A program made the position numbers and the translations under genes. From Scyliorhinus canicula (Eukaryota): a stretch of 64,000 nucleotides of DNA. Under the pieces are notes generated by a model. That model was given only the letters and a program-made list of their open reading frames with translations. It did not search any database and had not been told where the DNA came from. Positions 617 through 28,600 of the stretch are shown here, piece after piece. The stretch covers positions 116,242,552 through 116,306,551 of the forward strand of contig NC_052147.1 of assembly GCF_902713615.1 (NCBI RefSeq). The letters run 5' to 3'. Position 1 is the first letter of the stretch. Each line of letters starts with the position of its first letter.

Positions 617-3480
617 TGGTGGAGTGAAGGATGGGGGTGGAAATGTAGTGCAGAAGGGGACAGAAGTAAACGGGGTCTTTAGGGACTTTTACGAGGGATT
701 GTACCGGTTGGAACCTCCGAGGGGGAGAGAGGGGTTGGAGAGTTTCATGAACAGGCTATGTTTCCCAAGGGTTCATGAGAGGCTGGTAGAGGGGCTGGGG
801 GCGCCGATAGAGTTGGAGGAGCTAGTCAGGGGGATCGGACAAATGCACTCGGGTAAGGCCCCGGGGCCGGACGGGTTCCCGGCGGAATTTTACAAAAAAT
901 ATGCGGACCTGGTGGGTCCCCTGTTGATGCGAACTTTCAATGAGGCATGGGAGGGGGGGGGGGGGGGGGCTTTGCCCCCGATGATGTCGCGGGCACTGAT
1001 CTCTTTGATCCTAAAATGGGATAAGGACCCCTTGCAGTGCGGATCATATAGGCCTATCTCGCTCCTTAATGTAGACGCTAAGTTACTGGCGAAGATCCTG
1101 GCTACCAGGATAGAGGATTGTGTACCAGAGGTAATTCATGAAGATCAGACAGGATTTGTCAAGGGACGGCAGCTCAACACGAATGTGCGGAGACTGCTCA
1201 ATGTTATCATGATGCCGGCAGTGGAAGGGGAGGCGGAGATAGTGGTGGCGCTGGACGCAGAGAAAGCGTTTGATAGAGTTGAGTGGGGGTACCTGTGGGA
1301 GGTGCTGGAGAGGTTTGGATTTGGGGAGGGATTCATCAAATGGGTGAGGCTGCTTTACGCGGCTCCGATGGCGAGTGTAGTCACAAATGGAAGGAGATCG
1401 GAGTACTTTAGGCTCTATCGTGGGACCAGGCAGGGGTGTCCCCTGTCCCCCCTGCTCTTTGCACTGGCGATTGAACCGCTGGCCATGGCGTTGAGGGAGT
1501 CAGGGAAATGGAGGGGTCTGGTGCGGGGTGGGGAGGAGCACCGGGTATCGCTGTATGCGGACGACCTGCTGTTATATGTGGCGGACCCAGAGGGGGGAAT
1601 GCCGGGGGTGATGGAGCTGTTAGCGGAATTTGGGGGCTTTTCGGGATATAAGCTAAATTTAGGAAAGAGCGAGGTATTTGTAGTGCACCCGGTAGAGCAA
1701 GAGGAGGGAATTGGGAGGCTCCCTTTCAGGAGGGCAGTGAAGAGTCTCAGGTACCTAGGGGTGCAGGTGGCCAGGAGTTAGGGGGCTCTCCATAAGCTTA
1801 ACTTCACCAGACTAGTGAAACAGATGGAGGAGGAATTTAAAAGGTGGGACATGGTGCCGCTATCGCTGGCGGGCAGAGTGCAATCCGTCAAAATGATGGT
1901 TCTCCCGAGGTTCTTATTCCTCTTCCAGTGCTTGCCAATCTTTATCCCTAGGGCCTTTTTTAAAAGGGTGACCAGCAGCATCATGGGATTTGTTTGGGCG
2001 CATGGCACCCCGAGGGTGAAGAGGGTCTTCTTGGAGCGGGGTAGAGATGGGGGGGCTGGCGTTGCCCAACTCTCGGGGTACTACTGGGCGGCCAACGTGT
2101 CGATGGTGCGTAAGTGGGTGATGGAGGGGGAGGGGGCAGCATGGAAACGGATGGAGAGAGCGTCCTGTGGGGATACAAGCCTGGGGGCCCTGGTAACGGC
2201 GCCGTTGCCGCTCCCTCCCATGAGGTATACCACGTGTCCGGTGGCGGCGGCTACCCTCAAGATTTGGGGTCAGTGGAGGCGACATAGGGGAGAAGTGGGG
2301 GGCTCGATGGAGGCTCTGTTAAGGGTGAACCATAGGTTCGTCCCGGTGAACATGGATGGGGGATTTCAGGGATGGTACAGAGCGGGCATTAGACAGCTGA
2401 GGGACCTGTTTATCGACGGAAGGTTTGCGAGCCTGGGGGAGTTGGAGGAGAAATTTGGGCTCCCTCCGGGAAACATGTTTAGATATCTGCAGGTAAAGGC
2501 ATTTGCTAGACGGCAGGTGGAGGGGTTCCCTGCGCTCCCTCAAGGGGGTGAGTGACAGGGTGCTTTCGGGGTTCTGGGTCGGGGAGGGCAAGATATCCGA
2601 TATCTACAAGGTTATGCAGGAGGTGGAAGAGGCGTCAGTAGAGGAGCTGAAAACGAAGTGGGAGGGGGAACTGGGGGAACAGATCGAAGACGGGACATGG
2701 GCTGATGCCCTGGAGAGGGTAAATTCTTCCTCCTCGTGTGCGCGGCTTAGCCTCATTCAATCCAACGTGCTGCATAGGGCCCACATGACTGGGTCGAGGA
2801 TGAGTAGGTTCTTTGGGGGTGAAGATAGGTGTGTCAGGTACTCGGGAGTCCAGCGAACCATGCCCATATGTTCTGGGCATGCCCGGCACTGGAGGAGTTC
2901 TGGAAGGGGGTGGCGAGGACGGTGTCAAGGGTGGTGGGATCCAGGGTCAAGCCAGGATGGGGACTCGCGATCTTTGGGGTTGGGGTAGAGTCGGGAGTGC
3001 AGGAGGCGAAAGAGGCCGGTTTGCTGGCCTTTGCGTCCCTAGTAGCCCGGCGAAGGATTTTGCTACAATGGAAGGATGCAAGGCCCCCAAGTGTGGAGAC
3101 CTGGATCAATGACATGGCGGGCTTCATTAAGCTTGAGAAGGTTAAATTCGCCCTGAGAGGATCGGTGCAAGGGTTGTTTAAGCGGTGGCAACCTTTCCTC
3201 GACTTTCTGGCTCAACGATAGGGTACTGGGACAGTAGCAGCAGCAACCTGGGGGGGGGGGACAATGACTATGTTTGTTTATTTTATTTAAATTTGATTTA
3301 TTTAATTTAAATTTATGGTTAAGTTTTCTTGTTGGGGGGGGGGTGGGGGGAGTGTGACACATGTGATATTACGGTTTGGGGGGATTTGTGGGTGTTAGGG
3401 GGCAGTTCGTTGTATATTATTACTTGTTACATTTTTATATTTTCTGTAAAAAATTCCAATAAAAATTGTTTTAAAAAAAT
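617..3480 (+). mobile_element. 5'-truncated L1-clade LINE (ORF2 RT and C-terminal region, disrupted)
   Basis: KAPGPDGFP, LDAEKAFDRVEW, GTRQGCPLSPLLF, LYADD; premature TAG at 1779 and frame switches near 2540 and 2845; G/T-rich 3' UTR, AATAAA, short A tail; 13-bp TSD AAGGGAGATGAAT at 604-616 and 3481-3493. Confidence 0.93.
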
Positions 3481-12100: not shown

Positions 12101-15100
12101 AGATGCTAGAAATCTGAAATAAAAACAGAAAAGGCTGGAAATACTCAACAGATCAAAAAGGGTCTGTAGAGGGAGAAAGAGAGTTAACGTTTCCGATCAA
12201 CTACCTTTTATTGAGCTTTGGACGTTTTTCCTCCTAATGCACAAAAGACTTGCAGTTAAACGGCAGCTTATTATAATTAGTGTATTATTACACTTTATAA
12301 TAATAAAGCGGAATTGTTATTATAGATTATTATAATCGGTTTGCACACGGTGAGCCTGCGGGCCAATAAGATAACTATGTTTTACTTTTGGTGGTTGCTG
12401 ACTTAGGTGGGAAAGAAAATTCAGAAGTGCAACGGGCAACGTATTGACTATTGCACGTCCTGCTGACCAAGCTGAATTTTCACTCTGTGTGTTTCAGGGC
12501 TTGCAGTTAATATCATTTCAAGAAATGTTTTAAAATTCCAGAAAACCATACAGCTCATTGAACATGCCAATATCTTTGTCCTCGAATCCTATCTGAATCA
12601 TCTGTGAATTTGGGTTTAGGATTAGCTGTAGAGGGATAAATGGAAACATGAGGGAAGACTGAATTTCACAATAGCCTTTGGATAAACTGTCAATTGCAAT
12701 TTATTTCCCATTAATTTTCTTTTATTCTTCTTTATTCTTTCACGGGGTGTGGTTGGCAAGGCCAGCATTTGTGGCCCACTGAGTGGCTTGCGAGGCCATT
12801 TCAGAGTCACGTAGGCCAGATCAGGTAAGGACGGCAGATTCCGTTTCCTGAAGGGTATCAGTGAACTAGATGGGATTTTATGACAATCAATGATAGTTTC
12901 TTGGTAACTATCACTGATTTCTATTCCAGATTTATTCACTGAATTCAAATTCCATCAATTGCTGGGGTGGGATTTGAACCCATGTCCCCACAGTATTAAC
13001 CTGGGACTCGGATTACTACTCCAGTGACATTACCACCATGACACCACCCCCCCCCCCCCCCCCCCCCCCGAGTCAGTTAGCTTGGAGCATTTCACAATAT
13101 AGAGTCTAGCAACTGAGGGCTACACAAATTAGAATTTGAATGCGAATTATAAGCTTAATGCGTTTATCAAAACCATTTAACCTGGGAAAGTCCAAAGTTT
13201 CACCCTCGGATCAAGAAGCGTAGGCTGATTTTAGCAGAGTGACTTTAGGGTGCTTCAGTTGGCCTCAAGTGTTCCCGGGCAAGAGCATTTATGCTTCTGA
13301 TTTGTTACCCCAGCTAAAGTGCATACATGTGGATTGATGGGTCTGATTCACGTGGGAAATCCTCCATAGCTAAACAGGGTGATTGCATATGAATGGCATC
13401 GTTTGGATGTGGTGTCAAATGGTAGTTGTCAAGTGTGAAATACCTTAGAGGAAGAGTCTATTGCTTTTGGGGTGGGGGAGGGGTTTGCAGGAGGAAAGAT
13501 TTGGGGGGAAAAGTATCCTCTTCAGTTAAATTGAGAGGGTCCAGACAGCATAACAAACAGGAGACCATCTTAAATTGTTCTCCCTGGTTTGATTTCCAAC
13601 ATTATCCAACCTACCCCTTGCCACATCTCTTTGTTTCTTGATCTTCCCCATCGCTATTCCCTTTGATGACTACCTCTTTGTCATTCAATCTTTCCTGTCT
13701 TCCACCCTATCTCATACCTTCCTATTGTTCCACTCACCCCTTGTCCGAAACCCATCATATCTCTAACTTTTCCTAGTTTTGATGAAAGACCATCAATGAA
13801 TTTGGTTTTCTTTCTCCGCTGAGACTCCCTGACCTGCTGAAGGAGGCTATTCAGCTCATCGAGTCTGCACCCACCCTCCGAAACAGCGCCCTACCTAGGC
13901 TCACATCCCACCCTATCCACGTAACCTCCACATCTTTGGACACTAAGGGACAATTTAGCATGGCCAATCCACCTAACCTGCACATTTTTGGACTGTGGGA
14001 GGAAACCGAAGCACCCGGAGGAAACCCCACGCAGACACGGGGAGAAAATGCAAACCCCACACACACACACAGTCACCCGAGGTTAGAACTGAACCTGGGT
14101 CCCTGGTGCTGTGAGGCAGCAGTGCTAACCGATGTGCCACCGTGCTGTCCTATTTACAGCATTTTTTGTTTTTATTTCAGGCTCTCATCTGGAGCGTTCT
14201 GCTTTCCGATTATTAACCCACGTCTATTATAGAATCTAAACGGCACTCATTCGCTCTTAGTTGTTTGGGCTCGTACGATTGTAATGCTTCGAATGAATAA
14301 ATTGTTTCCACTGTCCCCCCCTCTTACGGTCCATCAGAAACGTCTGGTCACATCACAGCAGTTACTGAAAATCCATTCGTTAAGACTGAAGATAAAAAAC
14401 TGGCAGAGTTACGGGCTAAGGGCAGGGAGTGGGACTGGCTGAATTGGTCTTGGAAGGCCTGCAGAGACTCGATGGGCCAAATGACTTTCTTCTGTGCTGT
14501 TCCGTTCTATGACTATGTTTGTTCATTTGGTTGTCAGTAGGATTTGCTGATATTTCATGCCCAGCATTGGTTATGTGATAAGGTCCTCGCCTCAGAGCTG
14601 CCATCCAATGGACACCAAGCGCTGGTGCACAAAGATTTATGCCACTGGTATGGTTAGTCCCTGCTTTACCCTCAATGCAGCCACCTTATGGCCGAGAGGA
14701 GAGTTCCTTCACCAGGAAATTGGAAAGACCTGTTGGGCGGTCAAAAGTGTTCACACAAAAATAATATTGCATTCAAATGGCCATTTAATGCCTCATAATG
14801 TATCACGTATCGATTGACCACCTTTGATGACTAACTAGGTTTAGTGAATCAAAGGGTATAGGGCATAGATAGGAAAGTGGAGTTCAGGCCACAGTCATGG
14901 TCTTATTAAATAGAGGAGCAGGCTTGAGGCCTACTCTACCTAATTCATGTTGGTATGTATGTTTAAATAGCAGATGCGATGCTCCATGTTCTGTGCCTTC
15001 TCTGTGATGTGACCATCAATTCACAAGACACGTGATTGGAAGTGAACAGTGGTTTTAATAATCTTACAACAGAGCCTGCCTGTGACAAGATGAACTGGCA

Positions 15101-21100: not shown

Positions 21101-24100
21101 AGGGCCAGCAGCATTCTGCCTATAAAAATCTCCAGCTTGCCTTCACATTTCCTCAGAGAATGAGGACAGAGGATTTGAGGATTGTTACCAGGGGGGAGAA
21201 ACAGGGTCGTTGTGTCTGCTTCTCAGCTGGACCAATGCCGCTGAGAGAAATTGAACGTGCCAAGTTTTGGTTGAACACAATTTCAGTTGCGATCGCGTTT
21301 GGTGTCACATCCAAATACTCTCATCACTGTTGAGATAATTGCCCAGAAATATCTCACCTCTCCAGGCCAGTGCCCGTGCGGTCTCTTTTCCAATTCCAGT
21401 GTTAGCCCCTGTAATCAAGACCGTTTTCCCATCTAGTCTTGTGTTGGATGTACACACACCACCACCCGCGCATCTCCTGTGAAACAGATTGGAAAGCATG
21501 ACAATTTTTCCTTCACTCGAGTGCAGTCGCTAAAAATATAGAAATGTCAATTCAACATCTTTCATCCCATCTGTCCTGCGTCTACCCGCTTCACAGCTCC
21601 AGGGTCCCAGGTTCGATTCCGGCTTGGGTCACTGTCTGTGCGGAGTCTGCACATCCTCCCTGTGTGTGTGTGGGTTTCCTCCGGGTGCTCCGATTTCCTC
21701 CCACAGTCCAAAGATGTGCAGGTTAGGTGGATTGGCCATGATAAATTGCCCTTAGTGTCCAAAATTGCCCTTAGTGTTGGGTGGGTTTACTGGGTTATGG
21801 GGATAGAGTGGGGGTGTTGACCTTGGGTAGGGTGCTTTTTCTAAGAGCCGGTGCAGACTCGATGGGCCGAATGGCCTCCTTCTGCACTGTAAATTCTATG
21901 AAACATGTCCTCCTGAAATCTGCAAACAAGTCTATTATGTGGTGCTTAATCAAACGGCTGTTGAAAGTCCACACACACATTACCCTTGTCAGTCCTCTCC
22001 ATTACTTCACCAAAGAACTTCATTCGGCTAGTCAAGAATGATTTGCCTTTAACAAATCTGTGCTGGCTTTCCTGCTTAATCCTTACTTTCCCAAATTACA
22101 ATGAATTTCTTACTGGATAAATGGGGGGAAATTGGGCTCTGTAATGCCAGTGTGTTTTTTTTTGGGAATGTTTATCAGTCTCCCAAAGAGCCAGGTAAAA
22201 GAATGATGAAGTAGAATATTGCTGAAAAGAGGCACATGTTGCTGAAACTTAACATCTTGCACTCACTGGGACAAACACAAAAATGTCAAATTTCAAAACA
22301 ATCACATATAACAGGAGAAAAAGGCGCTGACTAAATGGCAAGTTGACTCTGATTGGCGGAAGCATTTCCATTAGCCAATAGAATCAAACATTGTGTTCCT
22401 CTGGTTGGTCATAATAGCCAGAGTACATACAGACCGTATTCAAACAGCCCACACTCACAAAACATAACATCTTCTGTTAAATATGATTCTGCAATTGACA
22501 GCACTTACTGAACAATCATGAGTGCGGCAATAACTCCACTGACAACCAATTTAGGATAATCAGTCGAGATCGTAATGTGGTTCATTTACACTCGCTAGAA
22601 GCGACATACACTCACTCAGGGACACAGTCACTGCTAACAAAATGAATATGTTCAAGTCCTGTACCTTTTTTGAATTTCCAGGAAACTTGAAGAGACAATA
22701 GTTCCCCATGACTTTCTCCATGACAACACCTTGGCCAGTGAGAGTTGATTTGTCAACCAATCATCACCGTTTTCTCCTGTGGTATAAATTGTGAATGTTT
22801 GAAATTTGGCATTCTTGTGTTTGTCCTGGTGAGTGTAAGATGTAAAGCTTCAGTAACATTGCTCTCCTTTCAGCAAGTTCTGTACTCACAAGTGAATGTT
22901 TGGATCATGAATTACTTAAAGGTTATGTGCTGGATTATTTTGTAGCTCCTATTGCACTTCTTTATATCTTAGGAGCTTTCCTAAGAAAGTTTGAATAGTC
23001 TACAAGAGGTGCTCTGGCTAGTGTTGAAGTAATTTTGAAAAAGCTTGTACTGGAAACAAGTTGCTTCCAGAAATGGATGGCCTGGCTTGGAATAGAGCAT
23101 GATGGGGGGATTGAATCGAGGTCACGTGTAGCAGGACAAGCTGCTGGAAGGGGGGGGGGGGGGGGGGGGGGGAGGAGAGAAGGGCTCTCGGCACTCAGAA
23201 AGGTTTTACCTGAATGTCAACAAAGATCAACATGTGAAATTACTGCACCTCACGAAAGAGGTTACGGCTGAAATTTGTCAACTTCTGCAGCCACACTTGT
23301 AACCTTGAAGGCAACAATCACATTGCCTGTGGTTGTCAAGGTGACCGTGGCTCTGAACATTGTACATCAAGTCCTTTCTAGGTTTCTTCCCAGGTTAGGG
23401 GTGGCATGGTAGCACAGTGGTTAGCACTGCTGCCTCACAGCACAGGGATCCGGGTTCGGTTCCGCCCTTGGGTGACTGTCTATGAAGAGTCTGCACGTTC
23501 CCCCAGTGTCTGCATGGATTTCCCCCGTGTGCTCCGGTTTTCTCCCACAATCCAAAGATGGGCAGGTTAGGTGGATTGGCCATGCTAAATTACCCCTTAG
23601 TGTCCTGATGTGCTGGTTAGATGGGATGGGGGTAGGGGGAAGTGGGCCTGGTTAGAGTGTTCTTTCGGAGGGTCGGAACAGACTCATTGGGCCGAGTCTT
23701 CATCTGCACTGTAGGGATTCTATGGTTGCTACTGCAGAAACAAGCACCGTCTCACAGCCCTGCAGTGCTACAGGAGGGAGATCGCTGAGGCAGTAAATGC
23801 TAACCTTGACAGCGATGCCCACATCCCATGAATTAAAAAAAATTGTGTTTGAGAATGGTTTGTACAGCAATACAAACTGTGATTTATACTGTAGCTTGTT
23901 CAGGTGTGTTACAGAATAAACAGTAAGAATTTCCCAAGCTGCATATTAAAATAATGCACTCAAAAAGTTGCCCCAAACCAAAGCCAAGATTGCAAATACA
24001 TCCTAGCTGCATAAAAGGATGTGACAGCCAAGTTAAAATGTTGCTACTATTGAAATATGAAAAATATCCGACTTTATTATTGCTAGCAGGCTTTCAGGAT

Positions 24101-24965
24101 TTTTTTTTACAGGTTATTACAAAAATCTCCATTGCAGTTTCTCTCCCCTCCCTCCCCCCAGGACTTGGATTATATAAAGTCTTCCACAACCCAAGTGTCT
24201 GGATAGTCGAAATAGTTTGATCCGATGTGGGAGGGACGTGCAGTGACTGAACATCAGCTGAAACACCACGTAGCCAATGCAAATAGAGGAGAGCTGGAAT
24301 CCCTCCCTAAAACTTATGATCTGATCAATGACACCAACCTTTGTCGTGTTGCACGTTGTTCTGGGCTGTGTTTCTTTGTAATGTCCTCTACTAACCCAAT
24401 TGTTCTTCAAACACATAGGCGTTTCGCCCCCCCCCCCCCCCCCCCCCCCAAATCTTATTTGACAAAATAAATTTATTTGAGGCAGTGTTATGTTGGTGTG
24501 ATTTACTTCATTGCAGCAAACGCTCAGACGGAGAGAGAAAAATATATGGTTAAAGCACACCAGCAAATTTTACTTGAATATTTATATGCATGCGAAAAAT
24601 TATCCAAAGTATATCAATGTATACTTTTAAAAAACTACAAGCACCCCATTACTTCTTATTCATAAGTCAATCTTGGGTAGGATTTTGTGAAATTAATTTT
24701 TGCATCAAATATTATTTTAATGTAATTTAAAACGTAACTGAACTTCCAAACAAATAATATTTATAGGGTCGGAAAGCACCAGGAGCAACATTGGTAAGTA
24801 TAAGCAGATTGCAACATTAAATACAATTTACATTAATTTTTCCACAACAAGCAGGTTTTAGAATTGTTACGGGGAAAGGGATACTAACCTGATATATGGG
24901 GCAAATGCTGCCAAAAGAAGAGCAGCGAATGCACAAATCCCAATAATGGTGAATAAGACTGGCAT
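6067..24965 (-). CDS. RDH12: Retinol dehydrogenase 12-like (RDH11/12-type SDR), 7 coding exons, 319 aa
   Basis: Exons 24889-24965, 21358-21476, 19986-20141, 15771-15875, 10825-11034, 9298-9487, 6067-6169 (77+119+156+105+210+190+103=960 nt), all GT-AG and in phase. Hydrophobic N-anchor [43 protein letters not shown], catalytic YCQSK, C-terminus [14 protein letters not shown]. Adjacent to VTI1B/ARG2 as in other vertebrates. RDH12 versus RDH11 naming rests on orientation and is less certain than the family call. Confidence 0.92.
6640..8787 (+). mobile_element. Fragmented CR1 LINE ORF2 with nested SINEs (6803-7119 minus, 7711-7913 plus) and an LTR fragment
   Basis: [56 protein letters not shown]; SINE at 7711 flanked by TSD AAAGGAAGCATG. 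Confidence 0.85.
9298..9487 (-). CDS. RDH12: RDH12 coding exon 6
   Basis: [21 protein letters not shown]...[27 protein letters not shown]; 190 nt, tag/gtttgt; not in the ORF track. Confidence 0.93.
9549..9905 (+). mobile_element. Short fold-back element, probably non-autonomous Penelope-like (family 2)
   Basis: Inverted arms about 9550-9605 and 9808-9862; 3' tail GTTCTGTACT shared with the 22219 copy. Confidence 0.6.
10825..11034 (-). CDS. RDH12: RDH12 coding exon 5
   Basis: [25 protein letters not shown]...[21 protein letters not shown]; 210 nt, cag/gtaaga. Confidence 0.95.
11390..12065 (+). mobile_element. CR1 3' fragment interrupted by an HE1-like SINE (11461-11763, minus)
   Basis: GLDRVDRE / [18 protein letters not shown] split by the SINE. 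Confidence 0.7.
12097..12216 (-). mobile_element. Penelope-like pseudo-LTR remnant (family 3); related pieces at 13640-13840/14150-14180 and 16027-16075
   Basis: GCAGATGCTAGAAATCTGAAATAAAAACAGAAAAGGCTGGAAATACTC..GTTAACGTTTC; degenerate hammerhead-like end GAAACGTTA on the minus strand; family call from memory. Confidence 0.5.
12730..13046 (-). mobile_element. Third tRNA-derived SINE family (also 5160-5310, 6322-6476, 9030-9268, 31150-31470, 33614-33810, 51510-52198)
   Basis: Shared TGTCACTGGA(C)TAGTAATCC(A)GAG..GGGTTCAAATCCC..TTTGAATTCA..CCCATCT(G)GTTCACT among the copies. Confidence 0.8.
15005..15294 (-). mobile_element. Solo LTR, 290 bp
   Basis: TG...CA ends, 5-bp TSD CTCTG (15000-15004, 15295-15299); termini homologous to 19282-19579. 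Confidence 0.85.
15771..15875 (-). CDS. RDH12: RDH12 coding exon 4
   Basis: [34 protein letters not shown]; 105 nt, cag/gtaagt. Confidence 0.95.
16216..16541 (-). mobile_element. HE1-like tRNA-derived SINE with CR1-type tail (representative; similar copies near 3617, 6803, 11461, 13841, 21586, 23398, 26181, 33811, 42855, 46338, 47094, 51791, 57931, 61730)
   Basis: Box B GGTTCGATTCC, core GTGTCTGCGTGGG..TCCTCCGG..GGTTTC..CCACAGTCCAAAGA, tail GCAGACTCGATGGGCCGAATGG..CTTCTGCACTGTAAATTCTATG. Confidence 0.9.
16902..17092. mobile_element. GC-rich MITE (Harbinger-like TIRs); similar element about 33195-33383
   Basis: GGGCAGGATTCTC ... GAGAATTCTGGCC imperfect terminal inverted repeats with internal symmetry. 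Confidence 0.55.
19282..19579 (+). mobile_element. Solo LTR, 298 bp
   Basis: TGTGGTGAAT...GGTTCCATCA, TSD ATACT (19277-19281, 19580-19584), internal TATAAA then ATTAAA. Confidence 0.88.
19590..19889 (-). mobile_element. HE1-headed SINE with an alternative tail (also 59806-60100, plus)
   Basis: HE1-like head and core followed by GCCGGA(G/A)TGTGGCGACT..TTTTCACAGTAACTTC..GCCTACTTGTGACA. Confidence 0.8.
19986..20141 (-). CDS. RDH12: RDH12 coding exon 3
   Basis: [51 protein letters not shown]; 156 nt, cag/gtaac. Confidence 0.95.
21358..21476 (-). CDS. RDH12: RDH12 coding exon 2
   Basis: cag|[41 protein letters not shown]|gtgaga; 119 nt. Confidence 0.95.
22219..22886 (+). mobile_element. Fold-back element, family 2 (longer copy)
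   Basis: Inverted arms about 22219-22370 and 22715-22876 plus tail GTTCTGTACT. Confidence 0.6.
23180..23790 (+). mobile_element. PIF/Harbinger transposase fossil interrupted by an HE1-like SINE (23398-23724)
   Basis: [19 protein letters not shown] and [12 protein letters not shown] resemble the N-terminal part of Harbinger/HARBI1 transposases; stops and frameshifts. Confidence 0.6.
24889..24965 (-). CDS. RDH12: RDH12 coding exon 1
   Basis: ATG at 24965, [25 protein letters not shown](R), donor AG|GTTAGT; phase 2 fits exon 2. Confidence 0.88.
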
Positions 24966-25600
24966 CCTCACTGAGCTAGCAGCTCTAGCTGCAGCATCTT
25001 CTGCAGGAAGGAGCTAGAGACCTGAACTGTCAATCATTATCCTGGGACCGGAAGGAGTTGGAGCCCTGAGCTGTCACTCACTCTCCCCGGGAGACCGGAA
25101 GGACCCGAGGCCTGAGCTGTCAATCATTCTCCCGGGACCGGAAGGACCTGAGGGCTGGGCTGTCAATCACTTTCCTGGGGCCGGAAACCTGAGACGATCA
25201 TGCGTCTGGGGCCGGAAGGAGCTGAAACAACAGCCCCCAGAATGCCTTGGCCCTTCCAAGGCCCGGTCCGTCAGTTACTCACTACCCCCCCCCCCCCCCC
25301 CCCCAAGGGTCAGGCCCGGTCCGTCCTATTCTCCCTTCCCCCCCCAAGCCCAGGATCAGTCCGGGTCCGTCTCCATCACCCCCCACCCCCGGTGACTGCC
25401 TCTCTGGAGGGGAAATAATAAAGTGAAGTAATGGCGAACGCGCCAAAGCAGGATGCTGGATAAACGTGCCTGTTTTGAGGGTCTGGGTGAATGAAGTCAG
25501 GTGATTGCGGAAGGAGGAGCCGGAAGCCTGCGGGATGTTGCTGTAGCTGCTGCTGGTTTTCCCCTCAGAGTCAATCCCGTTGTTTAAAATCATCCCCGAG
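24966..25600. promoter_or_regulatory. GC/CpG-rich bidirectional promoter and 5' UTRs shared by RDH12 and VTI1B
   Basis: Divergent ATGs at 24965 (-) and 25601 (+); CGGAA ETS cores near 25048, 25095, 25138, 25181, 25212, 25507, 25520; YY1-like ATGGCG at 25431. Confidence 0.8.
25021..25222. repeat. Degenerate 43-46 bp tandem repeat (4 units plus a partial fifth) in the promoter
   Basis: Unit consensus about CCTGAGCTGTCAATCA(TTCT)CCYGGGACCGGAAGGACCTGAGG. Confidence 0.9.
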
Positions 25601-25697
25601 ATGTCTTCCGAGGACTTTGAGAAGCTGCACGAAGCGTTCGGTAGTGTTTATGAGGATTTGAGGCGCCAGTGTGAGCAGCTGTCCGCGTATTCGGGAG
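25601..25697 (+). CDS. VTI1B: VTI1B coding exon 1
   Basis: MSSEDFEKLHEAFGSVYEDLRRQCEQLSAYSG G|gtgagg. Confidence 0.92.
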
Positions 25698-28600
25698 GTG
25701 AGGGAGATGCTGCTTTTTGTTTATGGCGGAGGCTTTTCAACTTGGACAGCCCATGTCAAATACCATGTCTGAGGTACTGAATCTAGAACATGCTGACTGG
25801 ACTCCACTTATAGCTTGGCTTCTACTCTATGTTCAAATGTACAAATTGATGAACTGTGACAACATTCAGGAGGCCCTATGGAGGCTCTCTCTCTCTCCAG
25901 TAGACAAATTTCTTTTCTCTGCTACAAACCATCTCTCTCTTTATTCTCTACCTCACCAACCCACCTCCTCATAACATCACGTGTGGACTGTGAGAAACCT
26001 AGAAATCTCCAAACTTCCGCTTGTCTACTCTTTGTCCACCGTGGCTATCTCCAATCTTAACTGCTGTTTGTAACAGTTTTTCCAGATCCATCTCTCCTGG
26101 GAAACCTATTTATGGCTGCCTGATCCCCATATCAATCAGCTTTTGACCATATAGGGACAGGCCATTTAGCTCATCGAAGTGGGCAGCACGGTAGCATGGT
26201 GGTTAGCGTCAATGCTTCACAGCTCCAGGGTCCCAGGTTCGATTCCCGGCTGGGTCACTGTCTGTGTGGAGTCTGCACGTCCTCCCCGTGTGTGCGTGGG
26301 TTTCCTCCGGGTGCTCCGGTTTCCTCCCACAGTCCAAAGATGTGTGGGTTAGGTGGATTGGCCAGGCTAAATTGCCCTTAGTGTCCTAAAAAATAAGGTT
26401 AATGGGGATTGTTGGGTTACTGGATACGTGGGCTTGAGTAGGGTGATCATTGCTCGGCACAACATCGAGGGCCGAAGGGCCTGTTCTGTGCTGCGCTGTA
26501 CTGTTCTAAAAAAAAAGGAAGTCTGCTCCCCCAATTTAATGTGATTATGCCTTTTTCCCACACCATGTCATTAGCAATTAGACATCTGTCAGTCTCTACT
26601 TTAAATACACTCTGACTGAGCGTCCACAACCTTCTGGGGTAGAGAATTCCAAAGATTCACAACCCTGTATGTAAATAAATTTATCTTATTTTATAATTGT
26701 GCCATCTGGTTCTAGACTCTACAACCAGGGCAAACATCTTACTGCATCTACCCTACCTATTCCTTCATTACCACTATTAAAGCCCAGTACTTACTGACAT
26801 CAACTGTTTCTTTTCCTGGATGCACACTGACAGTCTCTGACTGGTGGTACATAATCACTTCTTAACCATTCCAGCCTTTGGCACAGCCAATCACATCATC
26901 TATCTCCATTGCTTGTCTGAGTTGGACTGCCCTCGCATGCCTCCATTCTTCTCTATGCAACCATGCCAGAATATCTCTACTAATTACATCTCTTCTCACC
27001 CCTTTGCTGTTACCCTTAAGAATCCATCTGTGGCCCCTTATGATTCTGCATCCACTTGCTTCTATTTGGTAATTTAACACCATGGGATCATTATAGGTAC
27101 ACCACATTCCATTCTCACCATTTCACTTAACCCCTGTGTGCCTGGGCTGTCAGAATTTCTGATATTCAATCTTAGACGAGCAATATTTTCTAATTTCCTC
27201 TGGAAAGTCAAAGCAACCTTCTTGTGTCCCCCCAAATGGACATCAGCTCTCTCTTTGTTATTAACTCCATCCCTAGATATTTTCTCCAGCCAAACTAGGT
27301 TCCAACCAGATGAGTGGTTCCAACCACTCCATACCATTTTCAAAAAATCATCTGATTCCACCTCTACTATTATGTCACGTCTTCACACCATCACAGCAGA
27401 TCCATAGTGATAATTGTATCTTTAGTGTGTTAAAACTTCCCAAGGCATCACAGGAGCAAAAATGACATGGAGACATATGATCAATATGGAGACATAAGGA
27501 CAGATGATCAAATGCTTGATCAAAGGGGTAGATTTCAAACATCTGTGCCTTTTACCCCCAGAGTTGAGTATTACAGCATAATGCTGGCTGGTTTGCCATC
27601 TTTCACCTTTGAGATCATGTGGAACAATGGAGCCTGAATCCTGTCCAGTGGATCTCAAACTTTCCCAGTTGTAAGACTTATTTTCAAATGTATTAATAAG
27701 CACAGATTTCCTTCCCTTTTTCTAAATGATAATATATAAGTATGGGAGTATTGCATGTAAAGAGTATTTTAATTGTTTTAGGAAAATGGGTAGGGAGGAG
27801 GAGGTCATTGAGAGGATAGGAGCCTCGAGAAAGCACCAGGGAAGCAGGCAGAGAGCTGGAAAACTGGGGAATTAAATTAAAGTATCTATGGAGCTGGAGC
27901 ATGGGAGGGCACCATGGGAGGAGGAGCAATAGCAGGGTGGTACAAGGAAAATTCACAAAGGGAGCATGGGTGGCTGGCTGAGTGGGGGTGGGGCTGAGTA
28001 CGAGCATGGATGGGGTGGGATTGGGGAAGAGCATGGGTGTGGTTAGGGAGGAACATGGGGATGAGAGTGGGGGGAGCACAGGTGGGATGGGGTGGGGGGA
28101 GCACAGGTTACGTGGGGGGGCAATCACTCCAATGGCTGTCACTCACTCGCTCTTCACCATGGCACTCTTGGCAGTCACCCAGATGGTAACGCTAGCCCTA
28201 CATTGTACATCCGCTGCAAGGTCGCTGCACTTAGGTCTCCCTGCATCACAGTTTGAGAATCACTATCTTATTCTGCATCAAATCCTTATTTGGCAGTGTT
28301 CTCTGATCTACATTGGCTGCCGATCTTGCAACACCTTAAATTTAAAATTCTCATCTTATTGTTTAAATTATTCTCTTCCTAGCTCTAACACCACCAGTGC
28401 CGCAACGTAATCTCACCACCGTCTGCTGATAGGTCTACAAAATTATGAGGGGCACAGGTCTTTTGAATGATGAGGGACTAGACAGAGTGGATAGTCAGAG
28501 ACTTTTTCCCAGGGAAGAGGGGTCAATTACTAGGTGGCATAGGTTTAAGGTGCGAGGGGCAAGATTTAGAGGAGATGTACGAGGCAAGTTCTTTACACAG

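Follow-up and report, generated by a model that had tools for sequence, protein, structure and literature searches.

A transcribed 43-bp tandem array with PBX-PREP and ETS motif matches between divergent RDH11/12-type and VTI1B genes in a shark

Tandem repeats with factor sites in promoters are already well described, as are groups of ETS sites at divergent promoters. Among described leader repeats with one factor site per unit, the TYMS 28-bp USF1 repeat (TSER) is the nearest counterpart. The 28-bp repeats of the TYMS 5' UTR contain a USF1 E-box each; their number is polymorphic (2R/3R and rarer alleles), and USF1 was demonstrated to bind them (PMC7712088, PMC2528158). The PBX-PREP decamer tGAxtGaCag (TGATTGACAG) is present in about 70% of PREP1 peaks, mostly in promoters, at positions -500 to +100. 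The partner described for it at a fixed distance, 11 bp, is CCAAT/NF-Y, with Sp2 as the bridge (bioRxiv 10.64898/2026.02.16.706105; eLife PMC6023610). Most divergent promoters are bound by GABP, whose consensus is CCGGAAGTG (PLoS Genet 2007, PMC2077898). One CCGGAAGTG can induce activity in the reverse direction, and GABP sites can direct initiation (PMC2077898). Expression climbs steeply as ETS1 sites increase in number, and divergent promoters share bidirectional factor sites. Finally, homotypic clusters, as far as they are presented in PMC6360817 (citing Gotea 2010), have multiple sites of one factor within about 200 bp of the start.

Here we describe a 43-bp tandem array located between the divergent genes of an RDH11/12-type dehydrogenase and VTI1B. 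It resembles the TYMS TSER in being an imperfect repeat in a leader, near the start codon, with a factor site in every unit; in both cases every additional unit adds a site. Unlike the TSER, it has shown no length variation, contains two motifs (candidate sites) per unit, and also serves a divergent neighbour. With the DECA-CCAAT element it shares the decamer itself, the promoter-proximal position, the repetition within one promoter and, in three of four units, a partner at 11 bp. However, this partner is CCGGAA, an ETS core, and neither CCAAT nor ATTGG occurs within 25006-25222, so the array contains no DECA-CCAAT composite. The agreement of the 11-nt gap between the decamer and CCGGAA with the decamer-CCAAT distance may be a coincidence, and we treat it only as a lead. 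A literature search for a composite PREP1/PKNOX1-GABPA element returned nothing specific.

The locus has several features of GABP/ETS bidirectional promoters (PMC2077898): the genes are head to head, their starts are less than 1 kb apart, several ETS cores have the same orientation, and the RNA 5' ends are next to ETS sites. It differs from them in that the cores are CCGGAAGGA or CCGGAAACC rather than CCGGAAGTG, have originated by tandem duplication, and are situated on one side of the initiation zone. The array is like the homotypic clusters in the density of sites near the start. Most such clusters are not recognisable tandem repeats, whereas the duplication history of this array is still readable.

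Structure and motif content of the array

The window, that is, the whole analysed stretch of DNA, is 64 kb long. TRF identified a repeat with a 43-bp period, 4.3 copies and 80% matches at positions 25006-25193 (score 198). This is the sole tandem repeat with at least three copies in the window (TRF score of at least 60). Both TRF and the alignment of units characterise it as a minisatellite, with at least two head-to-tail copies and a period between 10 and 100 bp. No strand is assigned to the array as such. The four full units occupy 25006-25049, 25050-25096, 25097-25139 and 25140-25182, and their pairwise identity is 68-84% (16-32% divergence). They are followed by a degenerate fifth unit of 31 nt (25183-25213), which together with the last ETS core and the array edge extends to 25222. 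This unit has kept the ETS core and lost the decamer, which is replaced by the near-palindrome GACGATCATGCGTC. The left edge of the array starts with CAGGAAGG (25004). The array is 41-257 bp from the RDH ATG (24965) and falls in the 635-bp interval separating the RDH and VTI1B ATGs, which makes up about 1% of the window.

Each full unit contains a decamer on the minus strand. A regular-expression scan found the pattern CTGTCANTCA starting at 25027, 25071, 25117 and 25160, with start-to-start distances of 44, 46 and 43 bp. Decamers 1 (25027-25036), 3 (25117-25126) and 4 (25160-25169) read TGATTGACAG, and decamer 2 (25071-25080) reads TGAGTGACAG. The same scan placed CCGGAA at 25048, 25095, 25138, 25181 and 25212, and the gaps from decamer to CCGGAA in units 1-4 are 11, 14, 11 and 11 nt. 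The five ETS cores (25048-25218) are all in the plus orientation, CCGGAAACC at 25181 and CCGGAAGGA at the other four positions. The first-pass annotation had described a four-unit array with these motif positions and gaps, and both analyses reproduced it exactly. It had also noted that the only decamer change among the four units is at the degenerate N; indeed, this is the A to C substitution in unit 2.

Shuffles predict 0.81 occurrences of the decamer pattern in the window, and six are present. The two occurrences outside the array, at 2549 in a LINE reverse-transcriptase ORF and at 28136 in a VTI1B intron, were rejected as isolated, chance-level matches.

The assignment of the motifs to factors made in the first-pass annotation holds in part. 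The decamer is the PREP1-PBX motif of the literature, and all four copies in the array (three TGATTGACAG, one TGAGTGACAG) match tGAxtGaCag; they lie at about -100 to -240 from the VTI1B cDNA 5' end at 25266, within the -500 to +100 range. CCGGAAG is the core of the GABP site according to the literature, and it is present at four of the five array ETS sites, but the strict GABP consensus CCGGAAGTG is matched by none of the five. The suggested period near four helical turns did not stand: spacings of 43-47 bp correspond to 4.1-4.5 turns, so that the sites drift out of phase. The CpG observed/expected ratio is only about 0.46, and thus the region is not a strong CpG island.

Two further ETS cores in the same plus orientation, GCGGAAGG and CCGGAAGC, were found in the VTI1B leader (25507-25527). 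Ahead of them is TGATTG, a PBX-type half site lacking the PREP half.

Flanking genes and transcription through the array

The RDH11/12-type dehydrogenase gene is on the minus strand with its ATG at 24965, and VTI1B is on the plus strand with its ATG at 25601. The two genes are thus head to head, as had been proposed, with the ATGs 636 bp apart; ORFs, domain matches and the Vti1b match all bear this out. Two exons of the dehydrogenase gene match adh_short, and NNAGVMMCP is among its RDH11/12-group signatures. We call the gene RDH12 below in the sense of an RDH11/12-type gene, as the evidence does not separate RDH12 from RDH11. The VTI1B reading frame opens with MSSEDFEKLHEAF at 25601, and later exons match V-SNARE and V-SNARE_C. 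The SNARE exon is closer to Vti1b (PDB 1GL2 chain C, 2e-16) than to Vti1a (7e-7). A word-based protein search for orthologues of other species with the VTI1B exon-1 ORF, a single short exon, produced no match. ARG2-VTI1B-RDH11/12 is a vertebrate gene neighbourhood.

The region 24650-25850 was compared with a second DNA sample (X2), a run of unstated type from organism A (X3), an RNA-type run from the sister species, organism B (X19), and raw stranded RNA reads (X24). A contig of 1890 nt from X19 has its last 336 letters on 24888-25225, followed by 30 letters matching 21446-21475, the end of RDH exon 2. Since it joins the two regions, it represents a spliced RDH12 mRNA with the entire array in its leader. 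Exon 1 of the RDH11/12-type gene is therefore 24888-25225 on the minus strand in cDNA. Its coding sequence starts at 24965, and the donor after 24888 is spliced to exon 2, whose end is at 21475. The same splice is seen in X3. There the mRNA contig extends to 25042 (depth 13.8), and 25039-25278 is spanned by a second, thinly covered contig (depth 2.1). As X3 shows no intron coverage, the latter contig is RNA rather than DNA carry-over. Most RDH12 RNA of organism A may begin close to the first ETS core and a minority further upstream.

On the other side, VTI1B exon 1 was delineated by cDNA contigs and stranded raw reads as 25266-25697 on the plus strand, with the coding sequence starting at 25601 and a splice to 33482. 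The 5' ends of VTI1B contigs are 25266 in organism B (X19) and 25316 in organism A (X3). Raw reads (X24) start in the bin 25347-25387, and all are oriented as expected for plus-strand RNA.

The cDNA 5' ends, 25225 on the minus strand and 25266 on the plus strand, are well within the 1 kb that defines divergent starts. According to them, the array belongs to the RDH12 5' leader and lies at about -40 to -260 of the housekeeping SNARE gene VTI1B, rather than in a spacer between the starts. The first-pass annotation had put it between the two start sites; instead it is inside the spliced RDH12 transcript, and VTI1B RNA begins at about 25266-25316. The arrangement of GABP-type promoters, with sites between the starts, is not observed here, although contig ends are not mapped start sites. 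For this reason, and because a C20 tract breaks the assemblies, the start positions of both genes are approximate; with this reservation, both genes start in or beside a C-rich stretch at about 25225-25320. What is new here is that the array is transcribed, as demonstrated by spliced cDNA contigs.

The region where both transcripts begin contains a second, loose repeat (25259-25371, no strand), formed by three copies of AGGCCCGGTCCGTC with C-rich tails at spacings of 53 and 46. The C20 tract (25285-25304) is inside this repeat, and it is 9 nt shorter in organism B.

The long RDH12 leader (24966-25225, minus strand) contains upstream ATGs at 25201, 25127, 25037 and 24997. They open uORFs of 7-17 codons that end before the main ATG. 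Two of these ATGs, in units 1 and 3 only, are formed by the decamer and a flanking T. A coding extension through the array was considered and rejected, as all frames are closed and the uORFs stop ahead of the main ATG.

Variation among units and between species

The four full units were registered by hand in an alignment of 47 columns, 16 of them in motifs and 31 in linkers. Seventeen columns are variable: 16 of the 31 linker columns and one of the 16 motif columns, the latter being the degenerate N. How far this agrees with the earlier description of intact motifs and diverged linkers depends on how the motif windows are defined. If the motif columns are fixed in advance, following the literature, the hypergeometric p-value is 0.0019, and a result as good is reached by only 0.4% of alternative placements of a 10-column and a 6-column window. 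With a free choice of windows after inspection, a 10+6 pair with at most one change turns up in 33% of random placements of 17 variable columns, and an invariant run of nine in 22%. At a chance rate of 33% with post hoc windows, the contrast between intact motifs and varied linkers is weak by itself; the description thus stands at p = 0.002 for windows fixed beforehand, and fails at p of about 0.33 for windows chosen after the fact. The motif-conservation signal is real only insofar as the motifs count as prior knowledge, and a scan over many windows is bound to produce examples like this by chance. All five units preserve the CpG of CCGGAA. Of the nine cells in the two linker columns with CpG, about three retain it, and the others read TG or TA.

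Over 24888-25225 (338 bp), two substitutions, both in linkers (25039 and 25088), and one 2-bp deletion at 25077 separate organism B from the window. The deletion breaks the unit-2 decamer, turning it into CTGTCACACT. Hence one of only three differences in the array hits a motif, as chance predicts; three events give an interspecies contrast of motif and linker change no power. The number of units is the same in organism B and in the window. X2 (25016-25262) and X3 are identical to the window over the parts covered. In the VTI1B leader and exon, seven substitutions over 432 bp are listed for organism B, and thus the array does not evolve faster than its surroundings. The divergence of 16-32% between units, compared with the few differences between the sister species and their equal unit count, means that the array long predates the species split.

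The organisms A and B also differ by T>A at 25638 and 25657, both within the 97-nt coding part of VTI1B exon 1; these differences are denser than those in the array.

Origin and possible role of the array

On balance we lean towards the explanation that same-orientation ETS and PBX-PREP sites, presumably bound by their factors, owe their multiplicity in a shared proximal promoter to a tandem duplication that is old and fixed. A 43-bp promoter-proximal module would have been duplicated in tandem to give four full units and one degenerate unit, and would have become fixed in this shark lineage beside a divergent initiation zone (about 25225-25320) that appears to be very compact. The duplication would have created four PBX-PREP decamers and five to six ETS cores in a single orientation. 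Most likely the array works at the level of DNA, its repeated factor sites forming a mixed cluster that could raise or stabilise the output of the shared promoter. It may also seed alternative RDH12 start sites within itself. Factor occupancy, an effect on expression and selection on the motifs are all what we infer from this reading, and a link to retinoid metabolism is, like factor binding itself, pure conjecture. We regard as unlikely the stronger proposal that decamer-N11-ETS is a stereospecific composite read jointly by PBX-PREP and an ETS factor, with cassette amplification being perhaps a recurrent route to divergent promoters in this shark genome.

The main competitor, less probable in our view but to be taken seriously, is a neutral minisatellite: a founder unit with functional or chance motifs was copied by slippage or unequal exchange, the extra copies have no selected role, and the motifs are intact by descent, occasional gene conversion and chance. 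This would agree with the result of the post hoc window test, the broken unit-2 decamer of organism B and the loss of the decamer from the fifth unit. Moreover, the adjacent loose repeat, which contains no motifs, and the C20 tract indicate that the region is repeat-prone. It is less easily reconciled with the result for windows fixed in advance, where the edges of the invariant blocks coincide with the decamer edges and the N position, with the retention of ETS CpGs while linker CpGs decayed, and with four decamers intact in organism A despite the divergence of the units. The placement of the array in about 1% of the window also speaks against it. Alternatively, the array could act mainly at the RNA level, in the RDH12 5' leader, with uORFs or structure controlling translation of the long-leader mRNA. 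The array is indeed contiguous with spliced RDH12 mRNA, and the leader has four upstream ATGs with short uORFs, two of them derived from the decamer and the flanking T. However, only two of the four units contain such an ATG, and hence it is not a conserved feature of the unit, and RDH12 coverage in organism A mostly stops near 25042 (depth 13.8 compared with 2.1 upstream). RNA structure in the leader was ruled out by folding: the leader folds worse than shuffled sequences (z = +2.4), 199 of 200 of which fold at least as well. We give the RNA-level reading little probability; an effect of the leader on RDH12 translation is likely a consequence of the array but not its conserved feature.

The first-pass annotation had also suggested a VNTR whose copy number tunes both genes between individuals. 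Tandem structures can vary, and the TYMS repeats with USF1 sites provide a precedent. On the other hand, no length difference was seen between the window, the X2 DNA contigs, the X3 RNA contigs and the sister species, where the unit number is equal, and the sequences from X2 (25016-25262) and X3 are identical to the window where covered. Copy number thus did not differ among three samples and organism B, a comparison of weak power. As the divergence between units makes slippage unlikely, we consider this suggestion very improbable. Least probable of all, and hardly credible, is a fragment of a dispersed repeat or transposable element lying in the promoter by chance. The window is rich in SINE and LINE copies, and the match of the unit to a dispersed repeat had been named in the first-pass annotation as an observation that would speak against its proposal. 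When this was checked, no other copy of the unit was found in the 64 kb by a consensus search allowing up to three mismatches, by a core search, or by word-7 blastn of the intergenic region; these searches returned only the array itself and C-tract matches. In the whole-genome contigs of X2 a single contig covers the array, at a uniform depth of 3.5, compared with 5431 on the C tract at 90% likeness. The lack of a second copy in the window and the single-copy depth in X2 led us to reject a dispersed-repeat origin.

By itself, the array changes no general view. If the units are bound, the favoured duplication of promoter sites would show in legible form how the sites of a shared promoter came to be multiplied. 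One DNA segment would then be both the upstream promoter of VTI1B and the RDH12 leader with its uORFs, coupling the two genes asymmetrically. Since the array consists of four internal replicates of a two-motif module that have long drifted apart, the units form a built-in mutagenesis series for reporter assays.

Two features of the wider window can be mentioned. The 64 kb contain at least seven more homopolymer tracts (C or G, about 20 nt), near 13042, 16096, 23150, 24427, 53079, 56604 and 58271. Whole-genome contigs pile up to a depth of about 5400 on the tract at 25285, and hence tracts of this kind are very frequent in this genome. LINE-type reverse-transcriptase ORFs (385 aa, 246 aa and more) are located at 624-3221, on the G-rich strand, and account for the strong GC skew of the first 3 kb.
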